Shown: positions 21,861-40,269 of the stretch, one piece after another
Layout: each line of letters starts with the position of its first letter
Position numbering within the stretch: the first letter of the stretch is position 1
Assembly (NCBI GenBank): GCA_904063045.1
Contig: CAJFCJ010000003.1
Location: 2,466,504 to 2,530,503, forward strand
Source: Dimorphilus gyrociliatus
Taxonomy: Eukaryota; Animalia; Annelida
Reading direction: 5' to 3'
Length of the DNA stretch: 64,000 nt
Notes under the pieces: model-generated
Seen by the model: only the letters and a program-made list of their open reading frames with translations
Database searches by the model: none
What the model was told of the DNA's origin: nothing
Program-made: the position numbers and the translations under genes

Positions 21861-22522
21861 TCCAAGTAGAATTGTCTATTTAGAATTGAAATTTACTTGA
21901 TGAAAGACTTACTGGTTTTAATTGAAAAGTGTAGTTTTCATGTATAAATTGAGAGAATTTCTAAGCTTATAAAAGTTAAAAAATATTAATAGCTAAATCT
22001 AAAAGTATAAAATAAATAGAATTTATAGAAAGGTGTAGAAGAGATACTTCGAAACGATAAAGCACTTTCATCATTTGTCAAATTCAGTTAGCATATAACA
22101 ATTATATACAGAGCAATTTATATTTTCGTTTATATCATACTTATAATAAAGAGATATGAAGTAAATTACTTGTATATTATTTATTGAATATTTGCTATCA
22201 TTAACTTTATTTTACTGATGATTAATTTAATTTATAAGACATATTTTATTTTTTATTTGTATGATGCAACAAAAAATTCTCTTAATCTTTTTATTAAACT
22301 TAATGTTCATGTATAAAGCTGAAAAATAAAAAAATAGATGTTATTGCTAAATTAAAATCGCCTTCTCTTCATAAATTAAATTGAAAAAATATGAAAACTA
22401 TGAACAAGTTTATAGAATGTATTATTAAAGTTTAATTTTACAGCACGTATTTTATTAATTCGAGTTTCCATAGAAAAAGAAAAATCCGAACGCCTCTTCT
22501 TTATTGCTTTGAAAATTGCAGA

Positions 22523-25500
22523 TCAGATCCTCTCTTCGTCGACCGGTTGAGGCACGTTCAACTGTTCCCTATAGTAGGGTACCAGGAATATAATGAGGGC
22601 CGACAAATTCATGAATATAAACACGAGAATGAAGAATAATCTGTCCATAACATGCGCCAATTCTTTCCATTCTTGGCAATTTTCCGATCTCTTTTTTTCC
22701 TTCTGGAAAACTGGAAATATAGCGTCTCTCATCGAAGAGTATTTACCGGGTTGGCCATTTTCCCTTGTAGAAGATGCTTGGTTAGCTTGCATAGCCGATT
22801 CTTCTTGTAAAATCGGCCTTAATAAACTCATGTCAGTTGCTATTTGGCCTAAACCGTGTCGGACGTTAGTTTTGTTTTCCAATTCATCAACAGCATGCAA
22901 GCGATCAGCTAATGACTTTGGCCGTCTAGCAGATACACACAGTAGCTTAGACAAATAATTCAAAACAATAATCCGAACCCATTTAGGTATCTTCCTTTCA
23001 GAATCCCGGTGGTGAAGGTTGAGCACTAGGACGGTTAGGCAAACAGATACCGTACCAAAGGCCATTGTACAGGTGAGATAAATGACTAATTTTTTTTTCA
23101 GATAAAAAGTAAACGAAAGTAAAAGAAATTATTAAATTTGTGAAATTTTGAATAAATCGATAGAAAAAAGAGAATACTTTTATGAACAAAAAAGAGAAGA
23201 AAATTAATAATTTCCTGTCTTTCCTTAAGGGCATTTTTTTTTAAAAAAAAAATTAAACTATAAAACGTATAACCTCGGGTCATTGGTAAAAGTTATCTTA
23301 TTTCACCAACATCTTTTATCTTAACCATCTAGATTTTGTTAAGTAAATTTTGTTGTACTCTACTAACAGTCCCTTTTAACCTAGTATAAACAAAGATTTT
23401 TCTAAGGATTATATAAGATAAAAGGCTAAGTAGACAAACAGTTCGTTATCATCAGTTTGTTATGATAAATTATTTCTTCTTTCTAAATAATATTTTTCTT
23501 TTCTTAGTCTTTAAATAGAATTTTACTAGAAAATGGACAAATTAGGAGACTTTTTTCTGTCCTTATACAGGGTCAAATAACGCATTGAAGAGATTATCAA
23601 AGTCATTTGGATATTTCCTACTTACCAATAATAGGAATATGTAGGGAAGTCCTCGGAACGTTCTCAGCAACCATTAGAAGAAAAACCGTAAACGCTAATA
23701 ATACCGAAATTCCCAGACTTATTTTTTCGCCAGCGTCAGGAGGTAGACAGAAAACAATCATAACCAGAACGCTGAGCAACGAACAGGGTAGGACTATATT
23801 CATAATGTAAAAAGCATGCCTTCTCCTTAAATATAAAGTAAATTGAACGTATGGATATCTCGTATCTGGACAGCAGGGTAGAATTGTTTCTAACCATTCA
23901 ACCGAGGTTCCAATGACCTAATTAGCAGTTTTGAGCAATGTAGAGCCTATGAAGAAAAATAGATTTAATGCAAACCTGCCACTCTCCATTCATTCGGAAG
24001 TTATGCGTTGGTATAGTACCCGTAGCATTAGTTAAATTCATACGAGCACTATAATATGCCCAAGCTCCAATTTGAATAGGGCACAATTGTTCATCGAATG
24101 GAAAATATCTTATATCTATGTCACAAGTTGTCGTAAATATTCCTCCAGGCTCCCAGTGAACTTTTCCATTGTAACTTAACCGAACCCTTATCTGTTTGAA
24201 ATCCGGTGCTAGTTCATCCGCTCTGTTTTTAGTATAAATATTTTTCATTAGGCCTTTTCAATTTTGTATAGCATTTTTTTCTTTTAAAAACACCAAACCA
24301 TCTAATTTTTACATTCATTATTTATAGTAGTATAATCTATTGACTGAATTAACTAAATGATAAAATAAACGATATCTTTTCTTAACTAAAAGCTGACTTA
24401 ATAGCGAAAATAGCTTTATCTAATTCATCAAAAGATAAAAAGTTCTGCTTAATTTACTAAGCTTCCTTGTATATTTAATATAATACAGTTACTGTAAGAA
24501 GATTTATACATTCCATCTAATAGGAACCGTCAGATGGCGTGATGAAAAATAAACTACTCTACTTTTTTCAAACTATATGGAATGGGGGTCATAATTTTTG
24601 TAGTGCAGAATGATTAAGAAGGTATCAAGTTATATAAGATAAAGGAAACAGTTAAGCATTCTTTCGCCATTGAAATCTAAATGACGTAACGGATGAATAA
24701 TGAAATTGTAAAGGGATATCTCAATGAAAATAATAACAAAGGATGCTAATTGCTTAGAAAGCAAACAGGAAGAAGTTGGGAAATGTTAATTAATTTGGAA
24801 AAGGAAAATAGAGGATATACATTTTTTAGCAATTACAAAAAAGAAGATAGTATAAAGTATATAAATAGAATTTTAAAAAATCAAAACCAATCAATCATTG
24901 ATAAATGTAACTCTCAATTTAAACGGAAAAGGAAATAAAATTAGATATTGTTAAGATTTTTAGGGTAAGAAACTTAAAAATTGAAGAGGTTCTGTAATCA
25001 GTTTTTTTCAATGAAACTGTTATTTGCATTCATGGGAGCCAGCTAGCAGAATGTATATTTTTCAGTCTATCAAACATTTCTTTTCTCTGATATTTAGATA
25101 GTAAAAAAAAAAGTGATATTATCTACTCCTATATAAAGTAGTTTATCAATTATTTTTGATATTTAGGTAGCAATGCGCGTATATTACGATGCATTCAAGA
25201 AGTATACATAAAATTCTTCATTAAATTGTAGCATGAGCTTAATCAATTTCTTGTCAAATGGGCTTTAGTTTGACAAATGAAATTATAAAAAATTTCCATT
25301 TAGAGTAAAGAAGGTATAAATATATAATTGTTAATTCTTTAATTATCTACCCATTCATTAAAGCAAGTTCTGGTAGCCAGATCCTTTCTGGGCGTATTAC
25401 AACGTCTGTCAAGTTGTCGTACTTTTCAGGGTTCCACGTCAACCTCTCGTCGAACCATTCCTGTAATATTTTTTGTATATAATGAAATCTTCTTCTCTTA

Positions 25501-28500
25501 AATTATTAATAAATTTTCCCTAAACAATTTCCCTCATTCTTTACAACTTTTCCTCTCTTTCTGTCTCCGTCTCTTTATTCCCTTTCCTCAACCTCCTACT
25601 ACTCTCCCGTCACTTTTAAACTCTCTTATATCTCATTTTTATATATAGTGTATGTATACTCGGTCCCGAAAGACTTCTTTTCATTATTTTTACCTTTTTA
25701 TAGATAATTTTTTTTATTTCGATCGTCTTCCATTTTTTTCGATTAGTAAAGTGATATCGTTAATTATTTGCGTTCAACGATATTCTATACATTTGTAAAT
25801 TTTTTTGCCCAAAAATATGGACGCTTTCTCAATTTTCCGCACGACTAGCCTGCTTCGGTCGTCATTCTTCGTTACGTTTAACAATTGCCTATATTCTTAT
25901 TTTCTCTATATTATATTTGTGCAGTATTAATAGGTTCGTATGGGAAGTTATTGCTTTATTTGATGTACAAATATAACATATTTGAGAGGTAAACTGTATA
26001 TACTTTTAACCGGGTCTCAGTGTTGGGTTAAACCTTTACTAGGGTGGTAATGTTAATTTGTTTTTCATACTAATTTAAGATTCAACTCATATAAACCGAT
26101 TAGCAGCTATTTACTTTAATATATACTGTTCTGAGGATGAAATAATATTTGCATTTAAGATATGATATGTAATATTTAAATTATCATTTCTTAATGAATA
26201 TGGATGCATTCTAGATGTGGAATGTTATTAGTCCTATACTATGCCAACTCTTGCAAAAGTAAAAACGTCTGTTAATTAAATATGGCCTAAATAGAAGACT
26301 ATTTTATGAAAAACAACTAATTTTCTATTATTAAAAGTACTAAAATGTATATTATTTTATTATTGAGTCTAGTGATTTTTCAACATAAAAACGCTGTGAC
26401 CAAATAAGCTTACTTTGCAGTATAAATTTATGAAGCACTCTACGCTTGCTGATTTAGAAATTTATAGGTTTTTCTCTTTTCTATGATTTGCGGGCCACAA
26501 GTCTTAATCATAAAAAGCTAGGAATACTTGTCCTATATATATGTAATATTTATAATTATATAAAGAAATTTATTTTTTTTATATCTAATCCCCTATCTAT
26601 ATGGTTTATTTTCTATCCTTGACCCAGTCAATTTAATGAGAAAGCCTCCTACGAGGGTAATATATTTTTGGATTGTAGATAAGTTTGGAAAGATAGAGGT
26701 CAATGGCTGAATTTATTAAAACTAATGCATTTAAAATTTTACAACTTTTACCCAATACTATAAAGTTATTTTTAGTAGAAAGTCTGAGACTTTCAACGAA
26801 GATATAGCATAGTAAAAGTTTTATTAACTTTTCTCTTCTATCTGGTAAACTTGTTTTGACAAACAATTAAGCGTCTATTAGAATTTTCTAATTAAACAAT
26901 CGCTAAAGAATGTTTTTAGATTAAACTCGTCAATTGTTACATGTCTTAAGTAAGCTGTAATTGAAGAAAAATCACTAGTTATTCCCCAAACAATTTTGTA
27001 TCTTTATTATTTATCCAACTCCTGGCTTCCCAATCGTATCATGAAAAAGCGCGAAAGAAGCTGCACGCTAAAGGTAAGTCTTGTAAAATGTAAAAAAAAA
27101 TATAAAAAAGAGCAAAGCGTTAGTATGAAAAAGAAATTGATCTACACCACGCTAATTTTGTTGCTTTATCGCAAAAGTTGGAGAATCAGAAAGTTATGAC
27201 AGCTAGTTGAGAAATATCAATCCTCCTTTGGTAAGTGAATTCCCATCGGACACTTAAAATTCGCATTTACCTCCCACTCGAGAAGAGGAAAAATTGAAAA
27301 AGCCGAAAAAAGCACTTACCGTAATCACTAAGCCAGTAGTAGTTAGTACTTGCGACCTTTCGTCCTGTTGTATACACAAGGAAATCAGAACAAGTTATTG
27401 TAAACAGCTAAAAAAAGTAGGCTTAGTACAGGATGGAAAAAGAGATAGGGTTTTATAAGATAGAGTAAACAAAGGAAGAAAATAACCTTTTTTTTTTTGT
27501 TTTAAAAAAAAAAGTAGTCATTGAAATATTTTAAGTGTAAAATATTTTGGTTGAATAAATAAGGAAAATAGGAGACTTAGAACTCTTATTTTACGCTTTT
27601 TGCCTTATCGAATGCCACCAGGAAAAGGTGGCTTTTGAATTATTTAAAGAATCGAAGAAGTCAAGCCGGCGTTAGTTGATCTGTAACGGATTTGGATGCA
27701 GTGAAGCGTATAAACTAATGGATCCCCGTTCGACGATACGCTTCTAAATTGCGGTAGCAACTTTTACTTTCCCTCCCCTGGTCTTTTATTTTCTCTCTCT
27801 TCTCTCTTTCCTATCTCTCAACGATTTCTCAATATTCAAATTGCTTTTACTTTATCAATCTTTCTCTCTTTCGATAATCCTAAATTCTTTTTTAAGCGTT
27901 CTTTTTATTGAACCGTCTCGTTTCTGTCTAGAAGAAATGGACGATACGTTGTACGCTAAGTGCAAAAGAAGAGTGAACAAGAGAGAGAACGAAGAAATCC
28001 GAGATTACACTGCACAAAAACTAAGAGCTGGTGTATGTTCAGTATATCTGCATTGACTATTCTGTCATCGAGCTGACATTTTGAAATATATGTTTGCAGA
28101 ATACACCTCGAATTGCAGGCCACCACTTGGCCTAATAGGTTTTTCTCTCTTAGATCTAGGATTTGATAAATACTTGTCAACGGCGTTATAAATTGCAAAC
28201 GGTTGTAGTTTGTAGTTTATAGTATTCCTATTGTAAACTATATTCACGTAAATGACAAACTATCAAATGAGAAGGAAAGATATCATTTTCTTTGCATTGT
28301 ACCATTGTTGGAAACTTTTTAGGGAACATGGTTATAAAAATGAAAAGTATAAAGCCGTTGAACTGTAAAAAAGAGAGTGTTTAAATATGTAAATGAATTT
28401 TATGAAGTATCTTTGATGAGAGAGAATTTTATCATCTGTTTCCATTTTTACGTTGTAGACAAAATCTGACATTTCCAAAAGGTTTACATAAAATATTATA

Positions 28501-29921
28501 TGCATCTAAATTATATTATAGAATTTAGTCAATATTTGTTGAAATTGTTCTATAAAAGAGACATTTTTCACAATCCTTTTGAAAGGACTTTTGAGAATTA
28601 GGGATTCGCTTCCCAAATAATTCTATATAGCCCCTATTTTATTCCTAGTTCCCTACTCAAATCGTTTTTTCCTACCCTCTTAACTATAAATCATACTGCG
28701 ATTAAATTTATTGTTGGTAGGCTTAGTTCTTATACCGTGACTTTTTTAATTAGATAGTAATTAATATTTATTTAAATTATTATCTTTAGTCTGAGAGTAA
28801 CTTTATAAGTTAAAGAAAAGAAGGAAAAAAATAGATAACGAAATATTTCAACCAATCTGTAATATTTCGTTATCGACGCGAAACAGACACGTTGTTTGTC
28901 CGTCGGCGATTTTTGCAGCTGTTTTGATCCAAAAAGTTATAAAAGAATATAATATAGTTATTATTGCTTTCTTTTTTTTACGTACATACGTGTAAGTAAA
29001 TACTTATTATAAATAGTGTAAAAATATCCGCTATTTCCGTTTTCAATCCTATTTCTTTCATTTAACGATTTATGAAATGATAATTACATAACCTTTAATT
29101 TAGTCACGTAACTCAAATACTTGACGCTTCGGCGATTCCTTCTTAAAATCTTACAAAGTCGATTTAGTAAAGTCCATGACGTGAGTAAGAAATAAAATAC
29201 AATTGTTGTTGACCATGACCCTTTAGGATGACAATCCTACTTTTTCTCCTAAATACGAGGATGACCATATAGAATATAAAATGAAAAAGAAATATTTCCT
29301 TCCAGTAGTATAACTTGGATAACGAGTGTTAGTTTTGCCTTATCACGTCCTCATTCGTTGAGTTTGTATATATTAGCTAATCAGATTAGACGATTTACAA
29401 GCTTTTCGTAGCGCGATTTCGTCGTTATCTAATTCGTCTTCATTAAAATATCATGTGACTGCTATTCTCCATCTCTTTCTCCCTACCCTCTATAACCTTT
29501 CTCGTCTATTCTTCATTTTCTTTTTTTCCCTTTCTTTTCTATATTTCCCTCTCCTTTCTCACTTTCATTATTTTTCCGTTTTGAGAGAGAAAGTGATATC
29601 TCTCTCCCCCATATCTACTAGTCTTGAATAACAAACATTAAAGATATTTCTCCAACGAGTATAAAATAATGAAAAATATAAAAAAAAAACAGAAAAAAAA
29701 GCCGCAGGAAGAGAAATTTATAAACAAAAACGTGTTCAATCAATAAAATTACGATTTCTGTTTTAAATAACTAACATATAGAAAATAAAAACTGCGTACA
29801 AGATATTAAAAAAAAAAGAATATCCCACTTTTTTGCGGTTAATTAACAGTATTTTTTACGATTCATTCTAGAACTGTAATTAGTAAACAAAAACTTTGTA
29901 TGACAGACAATGCGGATCATA

Positions 29922-29970
<49 letters not shown>

Positions 29971-32248
29971 ATATATCATATATATTCTTTCTTTTCTTCA
30001 GATGTTTTTATGTATAAACCTACCTATATAAACTAATTTTCTCTCTTAACAATGTTAAATAAATGCTTCTTTTATGTTATTTAGGAAGAAAAAGCGAGAA
30101 AAGGGGAAAAGCATTTTTTTCATTGTGTTAATATAGAGTAGAAAAGAGGAGGGTAAAATATACCCTTCAGTCTTTTCTCTTGCTCTCTCTTTCTTTCACC
30201 CCGGTTCCTAGAAATGATGTTAGCCCGCTGAATATGATATATCAGGACTTGTGATTGTAATAATCACGACGAAAATATAATGTATTTGTGACTGACCTAG
30301 GATAAATGAGAATGAAGAAGATATAGTAGGAAGCGAATTGGATGCGGATAAAAAAGTATTTAGGCTTTTGTTTCACTAAGTTATAATTTATATTGTTGAT
30401 GTCATATGAATGTTAATAGAAGGTTTTTAATAGTTTGTCATATAAACATAAGAACATCATTATACATATATCTACTGACTTTTTGATTATGACGTCATAA
30501 ATCAGAAGAGGCCGCTATCGAATTAAATACACAGCTTCTAGCGAAGAAAGTATATTTTATTCGATCATAACATAATATTATATATTATAGCTCTCATTGT
30601 ACAAACTACTCAAAGCATTGTACAGTATATTTCTATTATTAAAGGGCTATATGGGAAATAAATATCTTGAAATTCATACTCGTTTTGAGATATTGGCTTT
30701 TTAATAAACCTAATTAGGGTTTTTTAAATAAAAGGCCTTTGAATATTAATTATCAGTCGCAATTACTTAAGAAAATCCTCTTTATATGGTCCACTTCCCT
30801 TAAGGAATAGAATTTATCAGAGGCATGACCCTTTGTCTGACCTCTTTATCAGTAGCAAACGTATTTTGGATATATCGCCAAATGACTTTTCTGATACTTT
30901 TCTCCATTACCAGGATATAAATTTAACACTTTGAAGAGAAAAATAAAAGAAAATGACTGTCTTTTATAAATAGATTGCATTAAACGTTTTCTCCGATATA
31001 TATTCTTGCACCTAACGACCTATTTTGGGATCAGGGCGTCACTAATCTCCTTATAACTGCAATATGAGCTTCTTATCAGACAAAATAATCAGGGAAGCCG
31101 AATAATCTTTATGCTTGGAGGTATTTCTAATATCAAAAACTTTAATAATTAATCTAAAATTACTCAAATATTATATAATAAGTTAAATAATGAACTTTTA
31201 TATTCCGTCTACTGTAAACTTTATTTTCATTTTCGATTAGATATAAACGATCTTGAATCGAAAGAGAGACGGTAAACTAAAGTAGAGGAAAACGTCGTAA
31301 AAATAGGAATGAACTGATTGAGGTCGATTAGAAACACTTCGTTAAAATACATCCCGCTATAAAAGCTTGTCTATTTTCAAAGCAGTATCCAATCCGTTTA
31401 ACGACTGGCAGATTTAAAAGAAAAACTGTAAAAGATCAACAAAGTTTTGTTTACCCTGCAAAAACGCTTTTCAGATCGATAGGCCTAAAGTTAGGAAGTT
31501 GAGGGCGTATATGAGTTTTGCGTAAGAATAAAAATTGTGGGTGGAAGTACACGGAAAAGGAAAACGAGTGGACAATAGGAAAAGAAAACATATCAAGGAA
31601 AGAAAATAATAAATATGTGTCAGAATATTTTTTCTCTCGAAGAAAAGATAAAACAGGCACAAATAGTGGGAGAGATAAAAAAAAGAGAAAAAAATGGAGG
31701 AGAGAGAGAGAGAGAAAAGGAATTGTAAGAGAGAAGGGGTATTTTCTAATTAAATTCCATCTGTCGTGAATAAATTTTGGAAAAGCCTTTGGGCAAAAAC
31801 AAATTATTATTTGAACAAGTTAGATAGGAGAGGGGGCGAGAAAGAAACATTTTTTCTCGCGCTCAAATAATAATTTTCGAACCCCGTCATAAATAAATAT
31901 GTTGAGACGAGTATAGGCGATCATGCATAAAATTATAGGGCGTGAGCGGCGTCTAGACTTTATTTGGTATAGGGTTCGATTGAGTAGTTAGAAAAGAAAA
32001 AAGAGGCGAAATTGAAAGAATTCATTTAAGGAAATAAATAAACTAATGATAATTTCAAAGTTAAGCTGAGTAACTTACTAATCCTTGAATTCGAAGTAGT
32101 AGAAATTCTATGGTGACTTTTACAGTATTATTAACGTCCTTAACGCCTCTTGCGTCTATATCGTAGTCGACGAGTAGATAATTCAATAATCGCTGTTCAA
32201 CGGATATTCTACTATTCTTTTTATATTTCTGGCATCTGTCCTTCTTGC
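22523..32248 (-). CDS. Cys-loop ligand-gated ion channel, nAChR alpha-type subunit (divergent); signal-peptide exon not resolved. Exons 32248-32079, 27364-27320, 25460-25351, 24222-23976, 23917-23626, 23085-22523
   Basis: Cys-loop CDIDIRYFPFDEQLC, loop C vicinal CC (ILPCCPDTRYP), cation-type GEKISLG before TM2, four TMs, and 45-nt and 110-nt exons typical of nAChR genes. All phases join in frame. Confidence 0.92.
24532..24539 (+). promoter_or_regulatory. CTCF-like core AGATGGCG, intronic in the nAChR gene
   Basis: CCGTCAGATGGCGT. Confidence 0.4.
29925..29966. repeat. (TA)n microsatellite
   Basis: About 21 TA units in an nAChR intron. Confidence 0.95.
30487..30500. promoter_or_regulatory. 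CRE palindrome (TTATGACGTCATAA)
   Basis: Perfect 14-bp palindrome around TGACGTCA in an nAChR intron; enhancer role is inferred. Confidence 0.45.
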
Positions 32249-33090
32249 CTATAAAGAAATTACAATTTTTTGTTACATAATTACAGAATAAATACACAAT
32301 TATATTACGTAATAAACTGGAAAAAAGTGATAAACTAAAGTTACTATAAATCAGTTGACCTCCTCCCACTATACAACCCTCCCTTTTCACTTTCCTGCCT
32401 TTTCCTTAGTTAATAGGAAAGGAAAACGTTGTCGGTCAGAGTAACTGTGACAGATTGAACCGTTTAACGATATTCCGTTACCAATATATATAATACGGAA
32501 AATAAGGTATAAAACATCTATGATTCTACGAATATTTGTTAAATCGGTTTATCAAAAGTATATATATATATATATAAACCCATAATTTATATCTTAGGAT
32601 ATATATATATATAAGTATTCTGTATATATCCGCACCTTACATTTCAGCAAAAAACTACGTTGATATTCGTCTTAAATTGCACAGCTTTGCTTGCTTTTAC
32701 TAATAACAGCATTTTGTTATTACCGCTGTTCGAGAAAATAGGTCCTATCCCTCTATTTACTATACAGAGCGTCACCAAATAAAAGATCCAGGTAGTAAAT
32801 AAATGTAAATAAATTAGATCAAGTTAACTTTCTATGCTGATCCAAATAATGAGCCCTACATGACTAAAAAGCTAAAAGTAAGGAAAATATATTTCTCTCT
32901 GGAGCGGACGTTTGAAGAAAATATGAAAAAGAATGAAATAAGGGAAGATTAGAGGGAAACGAAAGGGATAAGGAGAATTTTTTAGGGAGCATGTGTTATA
33001 ATGGTAAAAATAGTTTTGCTGATTGGCGAGCGACGATCTGTAAAATTTTTTCCAGTCTCGTACATTGGAACGTCGTCGTTATATACGTAC

Positions 33091-33174
33091 CTTCTTTAAA
33101 TAATCTAGAATTCGCCCCCTCTCTGAAAGTTTTTCTGTTCTTTAGCTGTTTTCCGGTTGAAAATTTCTGGGTGA
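33091..33174 (-). CDS. Candidate 84-nt phase 1-1 nAChR N-terminal exon
   Basis: Flanked by ttttgcag and gtacgt. It is stop-free only in the frame that joins the 32248 exon (TQKFSTGKQLKNRKTFREGANSRLFKE-GKKDRC). Confidence 0.4.
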
Positions 33175-36100
33175 CTGCAAAATAATAAGCGGTTTATTTG
33201 TGCGTAAACAATATGATTGTCTATCAAAGGTCAGCCAGCTCGATTTACTTTTTACTTATTATCTAAAAAAATCTATATCAATTGTGGTTTCTATTGGAAT
33301 TTATTATTACTTAATCATGTACAATCACGTGATATTTCTTCCAACGAAACTACCATTCCTAAGAATATAGCTAATAAATAAAAATTGACATAATATACTT
33401 TTTATTCCTTTGACAAATATTTCCCATTTGGTGTTTTTTCTTCTTGTTTTTCAACAAACATATTTATTATTAATTATTTCCTATTTAGTTATGAATCCTC
33501 ATTAATCCCTCTTGTTGCGTAATCAAAAAAGTAATTTTAAATATTGCAACAAGCCAAATAATTGTACAAATGTCGCTTTAACAAATACAAAAAAAATATA
33601 GTTTGCTGTTATTATAATCGTTTTTTTTTCCTCCCAAAAATTTAATCGCTATTGTAGACTATCGAGAGAATTGTCTTAATCCTATAAGTGTGTGTATTAG
33701 TATTTATGAACAGTTTTTTACAATACATGTACTATATCTTTTATTTAAGTGTCTTTGAATGGCTTTTTAGATAAAAAACAAAGAGCATCTGCATTAAATC
33801 ACTAAAATAAAACAAGCCATCTAAATTGACGTTCAGATGGCAAACAAAATGTAAAAAGAAAACAGATTCTTCTGGGACAGTTGAAAGAAGGATAGAAGAG
33901 CTGTTTGGGATAGTGGTTGTGTTTCGTTTAATTCTTAATTAATATCTTTTGATGGCATTATTCATATCTTTTCTAAGAAGATACTAAACCGAAAAAGCTG
34001 TCGCAACTACAACCACTTTACGAATAAAGTTGCTTAATTCATTTGTCAATTGATGAAGATAACTTTATTAAAATTAATAATTATTTACTGTAATAAAAAT
34101 ATGTAAAGTAGTTTTAAGCTGTAATTCATAATAGCGGAATAAAAACCATGGCATCTCCCTTAAGCGGAAGAATGATTTTTCATATGATAAATTAAGGTAG
34201 TTTGAACTATAATTTAGGAAACATTAGCGTGAAGTAACCTTTAACAATTGCCTGTAAAACAATGAAATCTAAATTCTAATAATATTGAATTTGTTATTAA
34301 TAGAATATAATAGAACTTATTTCATACCAGAACTCTTTCCACAATCAGCTGTCAGCCATATAATTTCCCCTAATGTGCATACCAACAGCAACTTATTTAT
34401 CCTCATTTTCCAGTTTGTAGCATACTGTAGTTACACAAACTTTTTCTTCTTTCTTCTCTCCAGACTTTCTTTTTTACTCACAGAAAAACTTAATTTTGTT
34501 GTTTTGTTCGTTTAGAAAAGTAGAAATATTTTTATTTTGTTTACTTTCAAATTAAACAAACAAAAAAAAAACAATTGTAAAAAGTGGGCACGTTAAATAT
34601 CCGAAAGTGGCGGATAATCCGTCTAGCGTCCTGATTCTGCCATACTGAGACAGTCTACAGCAAAGTGCTGTCTGAATTTAGGCCCGCCAATCGAAAGTGG
34701 CGCTTCGGGTTGTACTTTTTTTCACCCTCTTTGATATAAATGTGTAAAAAAAAGGGAGAGGGAGAGAGAAATTTGCTTCCAATTGTAGCAATTTGAATAG
34801 TAATAATAGATTTTAAATTTAGTTAAATATAATATATATGGCAATGAGAACTGTATATATAAATGTATAAATATAGTACATAAATATACTGTAGACAAAT
34901 ATATATATATATAAATCGTATATGACATATCGTTCATACATTCATAGATAATTAATATACTGTTCATTGTATACTCTAATATAAATTAATTAAATTGGAT
35001 TGTTTGCATTTTTGAAATACCTTATTAATTAGGAAAAATGAAGAGTTATGTTTATTTATTCCTTTATTTATTATAAATAATGCATATAAAGCAATAAATC
35101 TGACTAAAAAATAAATCTGTTGATAGCCATTGCACGGTTCAAGAGTTAACATTTGACCTAAGCAAAATCGAATGCCGTCTCTTTTCTTGTAATATTAGGA
35201 TTTATCTGTATGAAATGTTTACTTTTTTGCATAGATTTGGAATCTAGTCGTTCTATTAAAGATGTCCTATATGCAATTCGATAAGATCTTACCATATACG
35301 TCGATCTACAGTTTGTCATGGTTGTTTGCCAGACGTGTTCTTCTTTATAAATACGGAGTGACGCCCGTAAATGACGACGTTTATCGACATTTTCAACGCT
35401 TAATTGCGCCAATAAAGACTCTTTAAAGGAAATATTAACGATGAGGATTGAGGGGTATTTTGGAAACAGATTTAGAAATGAACTTTTTAAGTGTCAATTA
35501 CTTTTTCCAGATTATTAGTCGCTAAAACCTTTAAATTTCTCTAGGCGTTCTTCATTTTGCTGTAGGTAAGTTAAATATTAACTGAAACCGTTAAGAAAAA
35601 AGTATAGGATTTATAATCAGATAAGCGATTTATCGTTAAAGGGTACTCGAACGAAAAATTGAGTGATATTACAAACTACACACTCTTGAAATACTGATTT
35701 ATCATGTATACAAACAATAAAGTGCGTGTAAACGACTTCATAGATATTTGTATATAGGCCTTTGATGACCATATGTCAGTTTGTAGTGTAGTAAAATATA
35801 AGAGGTAATCTATAAATGGAAAATATTCGTAGCAAGTCTCTTTAGCTTATTATCTTGTCTGGTACGTACCCAGATTTGTGCTGAGGAAGATAAATATTCT
35901 AGAAGATACGGTGCTGACATCTTTTTTTTCTTTTATAGTTTCGTGATCATATTCCTAATTAAAAATACTTTCACACTAATATCTCTTCAATTCTGTTAGG
36001 CTAACGCGCTTAATCGTTATAAACGACAGTCGATGCGATTAACTTGCTGATGGTATGCGTCACTTTTATCATTAAATAATTTATATATTGGTTTTTTAAA

Positions 36101-36707
36101 GTTTAAGAAGAAAACTTATAAAGTATAAAATATGGATAATCGATACTTGACAACCCTTTTTGCTCTGCTTTCTCGTCACTTATACATTAAAAATCCACCG
36201 GGTATTAATTGAATTTCAAGTATTGCTATATGAATAAACAACTACGTATATATAAACTACTTTTGACAAATTTCTCTTGTTTATTAAATAGAACATTAAC
36301 AAACAATAGGCCTTAACCTTTCCAATAAAACTATGATATCATTCAAGGTTAGTCGAAGGTTAAAAGTCATCGTTTGAAGACGGTAAAGACATTAGTTTTC
36401 CTTTAAGATTCCAGTTCACTCATTCCCCTTTTTCATCTCTCTCCTTCGAGGGATGTTACATCTGCTCAATGTCAATCCGGATTCCCAGAATTTTGTAAAA
36501 CAAGCTTGACAGCGAACGATGCTTTTTTAGATAGCAGTATGTCAATTTGTAGCCTAATTTCTTCCGAAAAGAGGACGAGTCTGGGAGCGTTTCAGTTAAA
36601 ATTGAAAGGGAGGAGATTAAAAATATGAAACGAAAATTCAATCTGTATTCCATATAGACCTCTTAGAAATTAAATTATCCTTTATTCAACTAACTATCAG
36701 AAATAAG

Positions 36708-36708
<1 letters not shown>

Positions 36709-36750
<42 letters not shown>
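36709..36750. repeat. (TA)n microsatellite
   Basis: About 21 TA units. Confidence 0.95.
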
Positions 36751-36754
<4 letters not shown>

Positions 36755-37532
36755 TGTATGAGGTAAAAATAGGAAAAAAGCGCCTGGGTGTGGTTTTCAT
36801 GGATTTTTTAAACAACCCGATGCTGGATACGGCTAAGTCATCTTTTTCCGGTGGAACTATAAAACTGTCGAAAATCTCTCAAGAAAATGTCGACAACGCA
36901 GTCATTGTATACTATCTAATCAAATTTACGACCGCCATTAACTGCTTCGGACGTTGATCTTTTTGCGGCCGCCGATAATCACCTTTTTTTTTCATCCATC
37001 AATCAGTAAGCAACAGGAAAGTAGATTGTCTTATTTATCCGTTATCTATCATCATAACAACGAGCTATACTGCAAAAATACTTCAACCTACCCCTTTTTC
37101 CCTATTTCTCCCTTTTTATTACCTATTCTGTCTAATTTTATTCCGTTATATTCCGTTCTTTCAAGATTTTAAAGCTTTAAAAAAACTCTCATCTTCTTTC
37201 AAATTCTCTTTTTGCATATCAACTCTTTGCTCATAGCAAATATTGTGATATTCAATACCATTGATTGTGACCTAATTATTAGCAGATGCTCGAATATACT
37301 TTTCACTGTATTTGCCTCCTCTGCGTCACGTTCTTAAGACTAGTGTCCTCTATTTGTCATATCTATTTTATTCATCTCCTTAACTTTTCTCTTATTTTGT
37401 AGTAAAGAAACAAATTTAAATTTGTAAAATTTCTTAGGTCTGAAACTTCTTACTTTAATAATATTTACGTTGGGCCGATTATCCAAATTCCTTTACCCCG
37501 CAAGTATTTCAGTCAGTTGGGGACACTACTAG

Positions 37533-37540
37533 CGCCATCT
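37533..37540 (-). promoter_or_regulatory. CTCF-like core
   Basis: TAGCGCCATCTG (reverse complement CAGATGGCGCTA) upstream of the nAChR locus. Confidence 0.5.
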
Positions 37541-38870
37541 GAAAAAAATTGTCATTAAAGCGAACCAATTTGTAAAAAAAGAAACTAACATCAAGATCTA
37601 AATATTATTCCAACCTAATCTTTTAAGAACAAATCGACAAATGAATCATTCCCAAAGGAGTCTTCTAAATTATCAGACCGCCGACAGTCTTTCAAACTCT
37701 TATGCAATGACAAAAAAAGCTATTTTAGAATCAACACCTGTCCTAATTACTGCCTCGAGTCAAATTATCCGATTAAGGTGATTTTTCCATCTGGCCAGGT
37801 CATCAACAAAAGAAAAGACTTTATTGCACCCTTTGGGCAAGTAAAAAGAACATTACAACTTGGTAACTTGAGGTTTAAGATAATTCGTTTTTTTTCTTTT
37901 TAAATTATAAAAATTTAAGATAAGTAGGGAATTTTTCATATCACTATATACTGTATATACTGCATATATTAACTTTACTTTTATTAGTAGAACCAATTAA
38001 CAAACGAATTGAATCTTGTAATAAAAAGTTAGTATATCCCATAATTGTTATTTGATGCCTCATCTTACGATATACAACTATCTGTAGTTGATAATAATAT
38101 CTTTTTTTTTGCAGACTACTCTTCCAGCGTTGGAAAATCATGAATAATTAACGTCTTACGTAATGTTTACATTTTAAATTATTACTATTATAAATGAGTG
38201 AAAGATAACTTTATAACCATCTTTCTTTTGCCAAGAAATAGCTATATTTAATTGAGAACTTGTTAGGGATAATAACTAAGTTTTTACACAGTTTATTCTG
38301 CATAACTGCGACTTATAGTTCTAAGGCGGTTAGAGTTTTGGTCATTACATAGGTTTAATTTCATCTTATATCTCTGGGGGGAAAGGAAATTAAACTCATT
38401 AATTGAATGGTATTCTCATTCGACCCGAAACTCGAAATTTCCTTTCTCTTTCAACCCAGTTGATTCCGATTATTTATCCCATTTTCCTTTCCCTAATTTT
38501 CTACTGCTGTGCTCATTGTCTAAACGTATTCAATTTAACTAGGGAATATTATGTATTTAGCTGGTTCTACGACCATTATTTTAAAAAAAATGTTGTGTTT
38601 TCCGTTCAATAAAACTTTAATTACAGCTTTCTTTTTTTATCTAAACAAGTTCAGAAGAATCTTTGTAGATAATATAAATTTATGGTTTATAGCAAATATC
38701 ATAAATCTAAGCTTTTTCTGCTTTATAATTTCACATATATAGCATTAAAATACTAACAAAAACGTCAGTTTAATACAAATGAAGAAGAAAAAATAATAAT
38801 TTTTATAATACTAAAAACATATTGACTGTGAAAACTTTAGTTCTCCTTTTTTTGACGGAAGTTCATCTAG

Positions 38871-38878
38871 CGCCATCT
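38871..38878 (-). promoter_or_regulatory. CTCF-like core in the Flattop promoter
   Basis: TAGCGCCATCTACAGG, 116 bp upstream of the CFAP126 ATG. Confidence 0.55.
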
Positions 38879-38901
38879 ACAGGATTGTACTAGAACGAAT
38901 C

Positions 38902-38914
38902 GTATCCTAGCAAC
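38902..38914 (+). promoter_or_regulatory. RFX X-box in the Flattop promoter
   Basis: GTATCCTAGCAAC fits GTNNCC-N-RGYAAC and lies 73 bp upstream of the ATG of a ciliary gene. Confidence 0.6.
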
Positions 38915-38986
38915 TTAGCATTGTATGTATATCAAGCGGCTGAAATTCGTTCAAATAAACGATTTTTAAGCTAGTAAACAAAAAGG

Positions 38987-40269
38987 ATGTCACGTAGTTT
39001 TAGTGCCAACCAGGTAAATTAATAGAGAAATTCATGTTTACTTAAAATACTTTCAGCAGTTCATTCTTTCCTCGAATTTTCATTGGTAAAGAATGCCCAT
39101 TTATACTGCATATAATAATTTAGCCGCTCGACAAACAAATAGGGATGTCTATTTTGATGTGAGTACTTCTAATTACTTCTTTTCTTATTGTTTTTCAGTA
39201 TCAAAGCGCTTTTGAGCCGAAAAAATTAAGGAATTGGGAAATACCATCTGAATTCCAACAGGTTTAATCCTCTATATTCAAACCCATAGATAACAGACAA
39301 AACTTTTCAAAAATTGTTTATTTTGCGCCTAGAGTAATAATTGTCCCTTTTACTTGCCTAAAGTTCTAATCCCTATTTTATGACAGATTAATTAATACAC
39401 TGGTGCCAGAAAACTATAGGTGGCGTTATTTAAATTATCTGAATGTTATCATGGGAAAATTGTACATTTATTTGGCTTTATAATTAATTAATCAATTCTA
39501 TTAAATAAATAAACAGAGACCGAGATGTTTGGATGGTTCAACTAGGATCATAGCGGACGATCGTGGTCGTATAAGGGATGGCGGAAAAAAGTCAAATGAA
39601 AATCCGTGGGGTAATTTTGTGGGTAATTGGGATATGCCTTCAAAACTTCCAGGCCCTAAAAATTGGATTAGACAAGCGGAATACGCCGGGCCAAGTGGTA
39701 AAATTGGAACAGCAAGATCACGTCATGCATTAGACATTTTGGATAAAAGTGCGGAATACACCGAATACCACATTAAAGGAGTGGCTAAAAATGAAAGTCG
39801 ACTTTCTTATAAGGTAAACCTACTAATTTGATTTATACTTATGAATATTTAAACAATTTTTTATAAGATATATTTAAATTAACAGAATCATCGCACCAGT
39901 GGAAGAAAACAATTGACTGATAGAGAAACTGAACTTAAACAGAAAATGCACGAAGTAGCTACTAACACTTCGCCAGTACCATCTAAAGTTGTAACCCCCA
40001 CGAAACAAGTTTCCCCAGTTGAGCTAACTGCAGCTTCTCCTGCTCAAAGCTTAACAAAGGCAATCTCTCCTGCTGGTTCAAAGAAGAGTGTAGCTTCACC
40101 GTTGGGCTCGGCCAGAGTCGCTGTTACCCCCTCCGGCAGGCCAATTGCTCCCACTCCGAATAAAGAACCAAGAGTAAAGATCAATGAAGATGCTAAAATG
40201 GAAGAAGAGAAAATTCCTTCTCCACCACTCTCACCAGCCACTCGGGCTTCTGTCTGTCGTAATCTTTAA
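38987..40269 (+). CDS. CFAP126: Flattop / CFAP126, exons 38987-39013, 39199-39261, 39517-39813, 39886-40269
   Basis: MSRSFSANQ|YQSAFEPKKLRNW ... GSTRIIADDRGRI ... NPWGNFVGNWDMP matches the Flattop signature (SANQYEKAF, TQIIANDRGHL, NPWGSFMGTWQMP). All introns are phase 0. Confidence 0.88.

Follow-up and report, generated by a model that had tools for sequence, protein, structure and literature searches.

The minus strand of a 64,000-nucleotide stretch of the genome of the annelid Dimorphilus gyrociliatus (contig CAJFCJ010000003.1, positions 2,466,504 to 2,530,503; this whole stretch is hereafter called the window, and it is eukaryotic DNA of ~30% G+C) carries a seven-exon gene for a Cys-loop receptor subunit, with exons 2 to 7 (E2-E7) lying within 22523-32248 and a candidate for exon 1 (E1) upstream. 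By sequence comparison, the gene encodes a subunit of an annelid-specific family of Cys-loop channels, predicted to be cation-selective, whose origin appears to lie among alpha7/alpha10-like nicotinic acetylcholine receptors (nAChRs). Relative to canonical nicotinic receptors the pocket differs at L55, E89, M/I93, H117, E119 and L190, while W149 (Tyr in one subgroup), Y151 and Y198 are retained. Judged by its substitution pattern, the gene is under strong purifying selection and encodes a working subunit, with a pocket that is not a canonical site for acetylcholine (ACh). The explanation favoured here, tentatively and with a probability a little short of even, is a conserved endogenous function, in which the subunit would carry a non-canonical site for an endogenous ligand.

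Gene structure and transcript evidence

Six coding blocks, E2-E7, were delimited on the minus strand of 22523-32248 from stop-to-stop translation and consensus splice sites. They are listed below from the 5' end of the gene, together with the candidate first exon, the shortest intron and the 3' untranslated region (UTR).

34328..34406, minus strand: candidate exon 1 (tentative); ATG, signal-peptide-like MRINKLLLVCTLGEIIWLTADCGKSS, plus 1 nt
32079..32248, minus strand: exon 2, 170 nt; N-terminal helix and beta1 (..SVEQRLLNYLLVDYDIDARGV..IEFLLLRIQGL)
27320..27364, minus strand: exon 3, 45 nt; DERSQVLTTTGLVIT, loop D; both junctions in the spliced contig
25351..25460, minus strand: exon 4, 110 nt; EWFDERLTWNP...RIWLPELALMN, loop A; PF02931 E=2.4e-9; joints 25460/27320 and 24222/25351
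23976..24222, minus strand: exon 5, 247 nt; loop E, Cys-loop and loop B; PF02931 E=2.8e-18; PDB alpha2/alpha4 E=1e-14
23918..23975, minus strand: intron between E5 and E6, 58 nt; GT..AG ends; skipped in the mismatch-free contig
23626..23917, minus strand: exon 6, 292 nt; loop C, M1, GEK and M2; PF02932 E=9e-21; closest to alpha7 in the PDB, E=1.2e-23
22523..23085, minus strand: exon 7, 563 nt; M3, ~100-aa cytoplasmic loop, MA-M4 motif (EWKELAHVMDRLFF...), stop codon at 22523-22525; joint 23085/23626
22459..22522, minus strand: 3' UTR, at least this far; X2 contig covering 22459-23086 with no mismatch

The exons together give the architecture of the superfamily, an N-terminal ligand-binding domain (LBD) followed by a four-helix membrane domain: PF02931 was matched on E4 and E5, and PF02932 was covered over its whole length by E6 (positions 1-59) and E7 (positions 59-233 of 233). 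Exon 2 gave one PDB match only, a weak one to Alpo4, an nAChR-like protein of the annelid Alvinella pompejana.

Public sequencing runs were mapped to positions 22450-28449 of the window. Run X2 yielded a 1274-nt contig with 0 mismatches and the joints 23085/23626, 23917/23976, 24222/25351 and 25460/27320, all with GT..AG ends on the minus strand. The loose end of this contig past 27364 reads, as its reverse complement, as the last ten E2 codons (..EFLLLRIQGL), so that E2 is joined to E3; the contig extends a further ~411 nt upstream of E2. The junctions from E2/E3 through E6/E7 are confirmed. Word depth in X2 was 108-293 over the exons against 3-17 over the introns, and although the library type is not on record, splicing combined with sparse coverage of the introns is the pattern of RNA-seq data; for this reason the gene is read as transcribed, and expression is the simplest reading of the X2 data. 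The coral metatranscriptome runs X6-X8 were rejected as evidence of expression, since their contig is unspliced, ~90% identical and differs in intron lengths, as from a related species.

At the 5' end, the spliced contig confirms through its loose end the E2 donor (TTA/gtaagt at 32079), while the E2 acceptor (tttatag/GC at 32248) is predicted from sequence. No in-frame ATG was found upstream of this acceptor, and a first exon must therefore exist. The sequence-only reading had given 22523-32248 as the extent of the gene; E2-E7 do lie inside it, whereas the gene start cannot be placed at 32248, which is the predicted E2 acceptor. A stricter scan for exon 1 returned no candidate. A looser scan of the minus strand over 32249-40000 found a single exon, 34406-34328, that begins with ATG (A at -3), is hydrophobic, has phase 1 and ends at a GT donor fit for splicing (TG/GTATGA), and with this candidate included the protein would tentatively comprise 501 residues. 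A short upstream open reading frame at 34418-34438 on the minus strand (ATG CTA CAA ACT GGA AAA TGA) overlaps the start codon of the candidate by one base. The introns, at 1.1-4.7 kb, are long for a compact genome, the exception being the E5/E6 intron of just 58 nt; the 4.7-kb intron between E2 and E3 contains a (TA)n microsatellite at 29900-30010.

The public model for this locus, DgyrCDS2509 (P0161, 375 aa), is identical to E5+E6+E7 of the window gene. Its start is a spurious ATG at 24248 within the intron before exon 5 (MKNIYTKNR...; the model span 23922-24248 on the minus strand is affected), and exons 1-4 are missing from it, which removes ~115 N-terminal residues including loops D and A. 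The full-length protein was not found in the databases searched, where only the truncated DgyrCDS2509 is present, and any published classification based on that model has used a truncated protein.

Binding pocket and pore

Residue equivalences were taken from four independent alignments, made with human alpha7, with Torpedo delta and beta2, with alpha2/alpha4, and with MAFFT numbered on fish alpha1. Loop D, TTTGLVIT/EW, runs across the E3/E4 junction, and an ungapped MAFFT alignment of exon 3 to the canonical DEKNQVLTTNVWL places Leu at position 55 (codon 27329-27331). Loop A reads WLPELALMN, with M93 at 25356-25358 and E89 in place of the conserved Asp (D89); in the PDB alignments of E4, IWLPELALMN stands against IWIPDIVLQN in Torpedo delta and IWLPDVVLYN in human beta2. 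Loop C, ILPCCPDTRY at 23855-23884, contains L190 (23879-23881), C192-C193 (23870-23875) and Y198 (23855-23857), and the HMMER alignment of E6 sets erfYeCC of human alpha7 against etiLpCC, with the second Tyr retained. Loop B is GAWAY, compared with GSWTY in alpha2/alpha4, and carries W149 (24060-24062) and Y151.

The vicinal pair C192-C193, aligned to the CC of alpha7 and alpha1, marks the subunit as alpha-type, and two of the five residues of the aromatic cage are retained (W149 and Y198), the other three being replaced by M93, L190 and L55. Position 55 belongs to the complementary face, where muscle alpha1 has Arg, and only two of the three cage losses are therefore on the alpha-type principal face. 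The complementary face is altered in loop E as well. Here the gene reads HWEPGG, and H117 (24156-24158) and E119 (24150-24152), which the sequence-only reading had not listed, stand by alignment where beta2 has F119/L121. Residues 55, 117 and 119 are assumed to face the pocket, by homology with the alpha4beta2 and alpha7 structures.

The Cys-loop CDIDIRYFPFDEQLC at 24081-24125 has its two Cys 13 residues apart around an FPFD core and aligns to alpha2, alpha4 and alpha1. The pore segment PPDAGEKISLGISVLLAFTVFLLMVAE matches alpha7 column for column, with GEK at 23723-23731, no -2' Pro insertion, a 9' Leu and E20' at 23663-23665, and mutagenesis has established that this pore motif confers cation selectivity. 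The motif positions reported by the sequence-only reading, its missing aromatics (L55, M93, L190) and the retained W149, Y198, CC, Cys-loop and GEK were all reproduced on the minus strand. That reading had also allowed that a corrected alignment might bring the aromatics back; none was restored at 55, 93 or 190 in any of the four alignments, with the exon junctions confirmed by transcript. Its intact cation channel likewise holds as a prediction from sequence, given the Cys-loop, M1-M4, the GEK/9'L/20'E pore and the MA-M4 motif.

An annelid family with a conserved pocket

One exhaustive protein-database search was made with exon 6, the best matches being mostly metagenome exon fragments of ~150 aa; the full-length relative P0012 from this search served as the query for a full-length search, and P0161 and the orthologues stood in for the joined protein. 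The full-length relatives came from annelids alone: Helobdella (2), Capitella (2), Paralvinella, Owenia (2), and two further transcripts or contigs. A maximum-likelihood tree of 30 rows was computed in IQ-TREE under LG+C20, with the window gene entered as P0161:11-375, a fish 5-HT3-like half-protein as the root, and sequences other than the cephalopod chemotactile receptors (CRs), DES-2 and ACR-23.

In this tree the 11 annelid sequences were monophyletic (100/99), so that a phylogeny with lophotrochozoan nAChRs, which the sequence-only reading had proposed as a check, returned a separate annelid-only clade. The window gene clustered with Helobdella_94890 and Paralvinella_1607g11 (97/95), its 1:1 orthologues from a leech and from an alvinellid. 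Four subclades were resolved, each with at least two species and with Owenia as sister to the remainder; the clade ranges from Owenia to leeches, and Dimorphilus retains all four paralog groups in a genome of 78 Mb. The sister group (93/86) consists of mollusc, brachiopod and bryozoan 'alpha-10/alpha-2-like' proteins, which have W55 and an aromatic residue at 190. When a profile of the clade was run against a collection of 5.8 billion proteins, the two top tiers were annelid only (534-717 and 468-489 bits), followed by Rotaria (406 bits) and Mytilus (398 bits) as the best non-annelid matches, with vertebrate alpha7 at ~330; this search scored word-sharing candidates only, and 'annelid-specific' is valid at that sensitivity.

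After the annelid clade, the best named relatives are alpha7/alpha9-alpha10-like receptors (vertebrate alpha7; invertebrate 'alpha-10-like' and ACR-16-like proteins). The window gene shares with them the vicinal Cys pair, the 13-residue FPFD Cys-loop, the GEKISLGI..VLL..TVF..L..AE pore and exons 3 and 4 of 45 nt and 110 nt, the classical nAChR (CHRNA) exon pattern. It differs from them by Y93->M, Y190->L, W55->L and D89->E, by HWEPGG in loop E instead of the canonical hydrophobic residues, and by its position in a separate clade.

Three paralogs in the same genome, all on contig C7 and thus not on the chromosome of the window gene, are 63-77% identical to it in E5 and E6.

G000:C7:2257905-2258607 (~2.2579 Mb): C7 tandem paralog 1 (L013)
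G000:C7:2261355-2261891 (~2.2614 Mb): C7 tandem paralog 2 (L002); vicinal Cys lost (..ILDISSGKGYAHV), and GAYSY with Tyr for the loop B Trp
C7, ~3.325 Mb: paralog DgyrCDS6450

All three have a loop D of the L55 type, and the loop A exons that were recovered read PEL..[MI]NG. The same genome also encodes canonical subunits with W55, Y93, W149 and Y190. Since canonical alpha subunits exist, ordinary cholinergic signalling would be independent of the window gene. At exon level, the LBD was matched at least 169 times in the genome.

The pocket signature is common to the family. Among distinct clade proteins and fragments in which loops B and C are both present, position 190, two residues ahead of CC, is Leu in 35 of 38 and Phe in two of 38, both from Owenia. 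Across 10 full-length members E89, Y151, Y198, H117 and E119 are invariant, and positions 93 (M/I), 149 (W/Y) and 190 (L/I/F) are less variable than the LBD median. Position 55 has two exceptions, both visibly mis-spliced Capitella models: in P0162 (CAPTEDRAFT_123138) and P0159 (CAPTEDRAFT_104243) the loop D exon reads VGISRLVASSFSILV or TTTAGYLQ instead of DERSQVLTTTGL.I., apparently through mis-splicing, which makes these false exceptions. Because the signature is common to the whole clade, the altered pocket goes back to about the base of the annelids and has since been maintained by purifying selection.

A closer comparison was provided by the coral-tank and reef metatranscriptomes X6/X7, which contain an unspliced orthologue contig over 23621-25462, ~90% identical in E4-E6. 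Its introns differ in length from those of the window (94 nt against 58 nt, and 1188 nt against ~1,100 nt), which suggests that a related dinophilid worm was living in those coral samples. Of 40 listed differences to this orthologue, 37 are synonymous and 3 non-synonymous, with synonymous changes only in the loop C codons.

Ligand site, alternatives and relation to known receptors

The favoured explanation, a conserved endogenous function with a non-canonical ligand site, draws on the pairing of changes across the pocket. As the principal face (loops A and C) and the complementary face (loops D and E) changed together and were then fixed, it is most likely that the subunits adjoin one another, whether in homomers or in heteromers drawn from the four paralogs, and that the interfaces between them form a working, non-canonical site. 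Ligand bound at these interfaces would open the channel and produce what the pore motif predicts to be a cation current. Together with Y198 and a loop-E Glu that is invariant in the clade, the loop-B Trp would point to a small cationic or amine-like endogenous molecule as agonist, which would not be ACh at normal potency. A more specific version, in which the four paralogs form an annelid family of cation channels that a transmitter-like endogenous molecule other than ACh would open through the loop-B Trp, Y198 and the loop-E His and Glu, is put forward as a tentative proposal that is more doubtful than probable. If true, it would define an annelid-specific class of fast-signalling receptors that dates back at least to the divergence of Owenia.

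Several observations weigh against this favoured explanation. Conservation of the pocket is just moderately above the background of an LBD that is itself well conserved, and the vicinal Cys are lost in Helobdella_70180, P0155 and the Dimorphilus C7:2261xxx gene; as some members lack this pair, the loop C tip would be dispensable in parts of the family. The retained W149 and Y198 would still allow weak binding of ACh or choline. Moreover, none of the compounds tested elicited a current from other nAChR-like orphans of annelids (PMC4801368), and such subunits may need partners.

A different role would be that of an accessory or structural subunit which, like vertebrate alpha5/beta3, assembles with canonical ACh-binding subunits into heteropentamers, sits there in a position that binds no ligand, and tunes conductance, desensitisation or trafficking while its own pocket goes unused. 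Such a role is possible, though on balance improbable. The alpha7/alpha10-like type, to which the nearest relatives of the window gene belong, tends to form homomers, which speaks against it, as does the fact that a compact genome has kept four paralog groups sharing one pocket signature. An unused pocket should also drift, yet L190, M/I93, L55, Y198, H117 and E119 are held across the clade, although this argues only weakly. Loss of both principal and complementary ACh contacts is nevertheless what an accessory subunit would show, and canonical alpha and beta subunits are encoded in the same genome; the annelid subunits that are silent alone, for which the authors suggested heteromers, also agree with it (PMC4801368). 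The accessory role is kept alive by the sporadic loss of the vicinal Cys in some members. The overall conservation pattern would suit an accessory role as well as a non-canonical ligand site, but not a fast-evolving chemosensor.

A weakened cholinergic receptor, opened through the loop-B Trp and Y198 by high (synaptic, millimolar) ACh or by quaternary amines resembling choline or betaine, is unlikely. The orthogroup of the window gene does retain W149, Y151, Y198 and C192-C193, and the best solved relatives are the ACh-gated alpha1, alpha4 and alpha7; three cage positions are aliphatic, however, the loop-A Asp is replaced by Glu, and the complementary face has His and Glu in place of hydrophobic residues. 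In muscle and alpha7 receptors, ACh becomes less potent by orders of magnitude when Y93 or Y190 is substituted. Less probable still, and best regarded as very unlikely, is the proposal of the sequence-only reading that the protein is an environmental chemosensor, possibly for hydrophobic cues, evolved independently of the octopus CRs. The aromatic-to-aliphatic replacements would make the pocket more hydrophobic, and the cephalopod CRs offer a precedent (PMC10338036, PMC11526382), but the family shows deep 1:1 orthology and just four old paralogs without a lineage-specific bloom, synonymous changes far exceed non-synonymous ones, and its conserved pocket contrasts with the diversifying selection at CR pocket sites (PMC11526382). 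At the far end, a decaying or non-functional copy is extremely improbable: the loss of canonical binding residues and the truncated public model could be taken to indicate decay, but the truncation is an annotation error caused by the spurious ATG, a transcript-like contig shows every exon open and properly spliced, and the 37 synonymous against 3 non-synonymous differences and the orthologues across annelids complete the case on which a pseudogene was rejected.

Against solved structures, the orthologue LBD scored best with alpha1, alpha4 and alpha7 (125-131 bits), then with Alpo4 (119 bits), while CRT1 (8eis, 9e6b), DES-2 (22qs) and ACR-23 (8zfk) were not among its top 60 solved relatives. 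The cephalopod CRs (CRT1, CRB1) are cation channels descended from nAChRs; they are insensitive to ACh, and their pocket is non-canonical and more hydrophobic (PMC10338036, PMC11526382). In octopus they form lineage-specific expansions with diversifying selection at pocket sites (PMC11526382), whereas the window family is old, with four paralogs, 1:1 leech and alvinellid orthologues and a pocket frozen across annelids, and the window gene retains the vicinal Cys, W149 and Y198; neither expansion nor diversifying selection was found. Membership in the CRs was rejected on indirect grounds, namely the annelid-only clade and the place of CRT1 outside the top 60, the CRs being absent from the tree. 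The nematode DEG-3/DES-2 and ACR-23 proteins are likewise alpha-type cation-channel subunits with a ligand other than ACh (choline, betaine). Membership in this group was rejected just as indirectly, as DES-2 and ACR-23, both absent from the tree, score far below alpha1/alpha4/alpha7 for E4, E6 and the LBD, and these ranks give no sign of common ancestry past the nAChR family. An origin independent of both groups, as the sequence-only reading had it, thus agrees with the annelid-only clade, while the score ranks bear on it only indirectly; its chemosensory assignment is not supported.

The closest parallels among annelid receptors are Alpo1, Alpo2 and Alpo4 of Alvinella pompejana (Alpo4 structures 8bx5 and others), which, like the window gene, are nAChR-like proteins with no known agonist; none responded to any tested compound, and heteromeric assemblies were suggested by the authors (PMC4801368). 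Alpo4 is the reverse of the window gene, with the cage retained (F103, W159, Y199, Y205, W65) and the vicinal Cys absent (PMC10338036), where the window gene has kept the Cys and lost most of the cage. It has also been described as phylogenetically isolated, whereas the window gene belongs to a well populated, conserved family. A survey of 649 lophotrochozoan nAChRs, including those of Dimorphilus, defined 25 families with no functional assignment, and Alpo4 was still an orphan there (PMC10338036). Annelids have 52-129 nAChR genes, and in the oyster the full principal site is present in 13 of 33 alpha-type subunits (PMC6896357). The lophotrochozoan expansion described by Jiao et al. 2019 is the same phenomenon, with CC-bearing alpha-type subunits whose principal residues are incomplete, but that work dealt with numbers and diversity, chiefly in molluscs, and did not define the annelid clade or its pocket signature (PMC6896357). 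The literature search found no paper on this annelid clade.

To call the gene the best candidate for a novel system in the window, as the sequence-only reading did, was an overstatement, since incomplete alpha sites are common in lophotrochozoans (PMC6896357) and annelid orphans are known (PMC4801368, PMC10338036). The gene is a divergent nicotinic-like orphan subunit, now better defined, of a kind already described among divergent alpha-like and orphan annelid receptors (Jiao 2019; Alpo1/2/4), and as an orphan receptor it is well worth testing, though it does not represent a new type of system. Functionally uncharacterised nicotinic-like genes number from dozens to hundreds in lophotrochozoans, and very few have been matched to a ligand; most evolve fast and are confined to single species, so that they make poor targets. 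As the window family is small, old, kept in a 78-Mb genome and fixed in its pocket signature, one identified ligand would apply across annelids, and systems for localisation and knock-down exist in Dimorphilus, Platynereis, Capitella and leeches. The gains are a corrected gene model, with ~115 N-terminal residues restored to DgyrCDS2509, and a family with defined diagnostic residues; if the subunit is only accessory, the result is an ordinary one.

A sister annelid group was observed at three places in the Dimorphilus genome, G000:C2:917894-918424 (L010/L016), G000:C11:1168578-1172324 (L015/L011) and G000:C6:3716958-3717531 (L017), and is also present in Ridgeia, Lamellibrachia and Capitella_181469. 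Its members have L55, a PEF..ING loop A and F/Y at 190. In their pore a G/S/Q-QK segment, two residues shorter, replaces GEK, the -1' Glu is lost and M2 contains an Arg (..LLSFRIFLLNVAD), and these channels may have altered ion selectivity. Other aromatic-box-poor Cys-loop genes also occur in the same genome.

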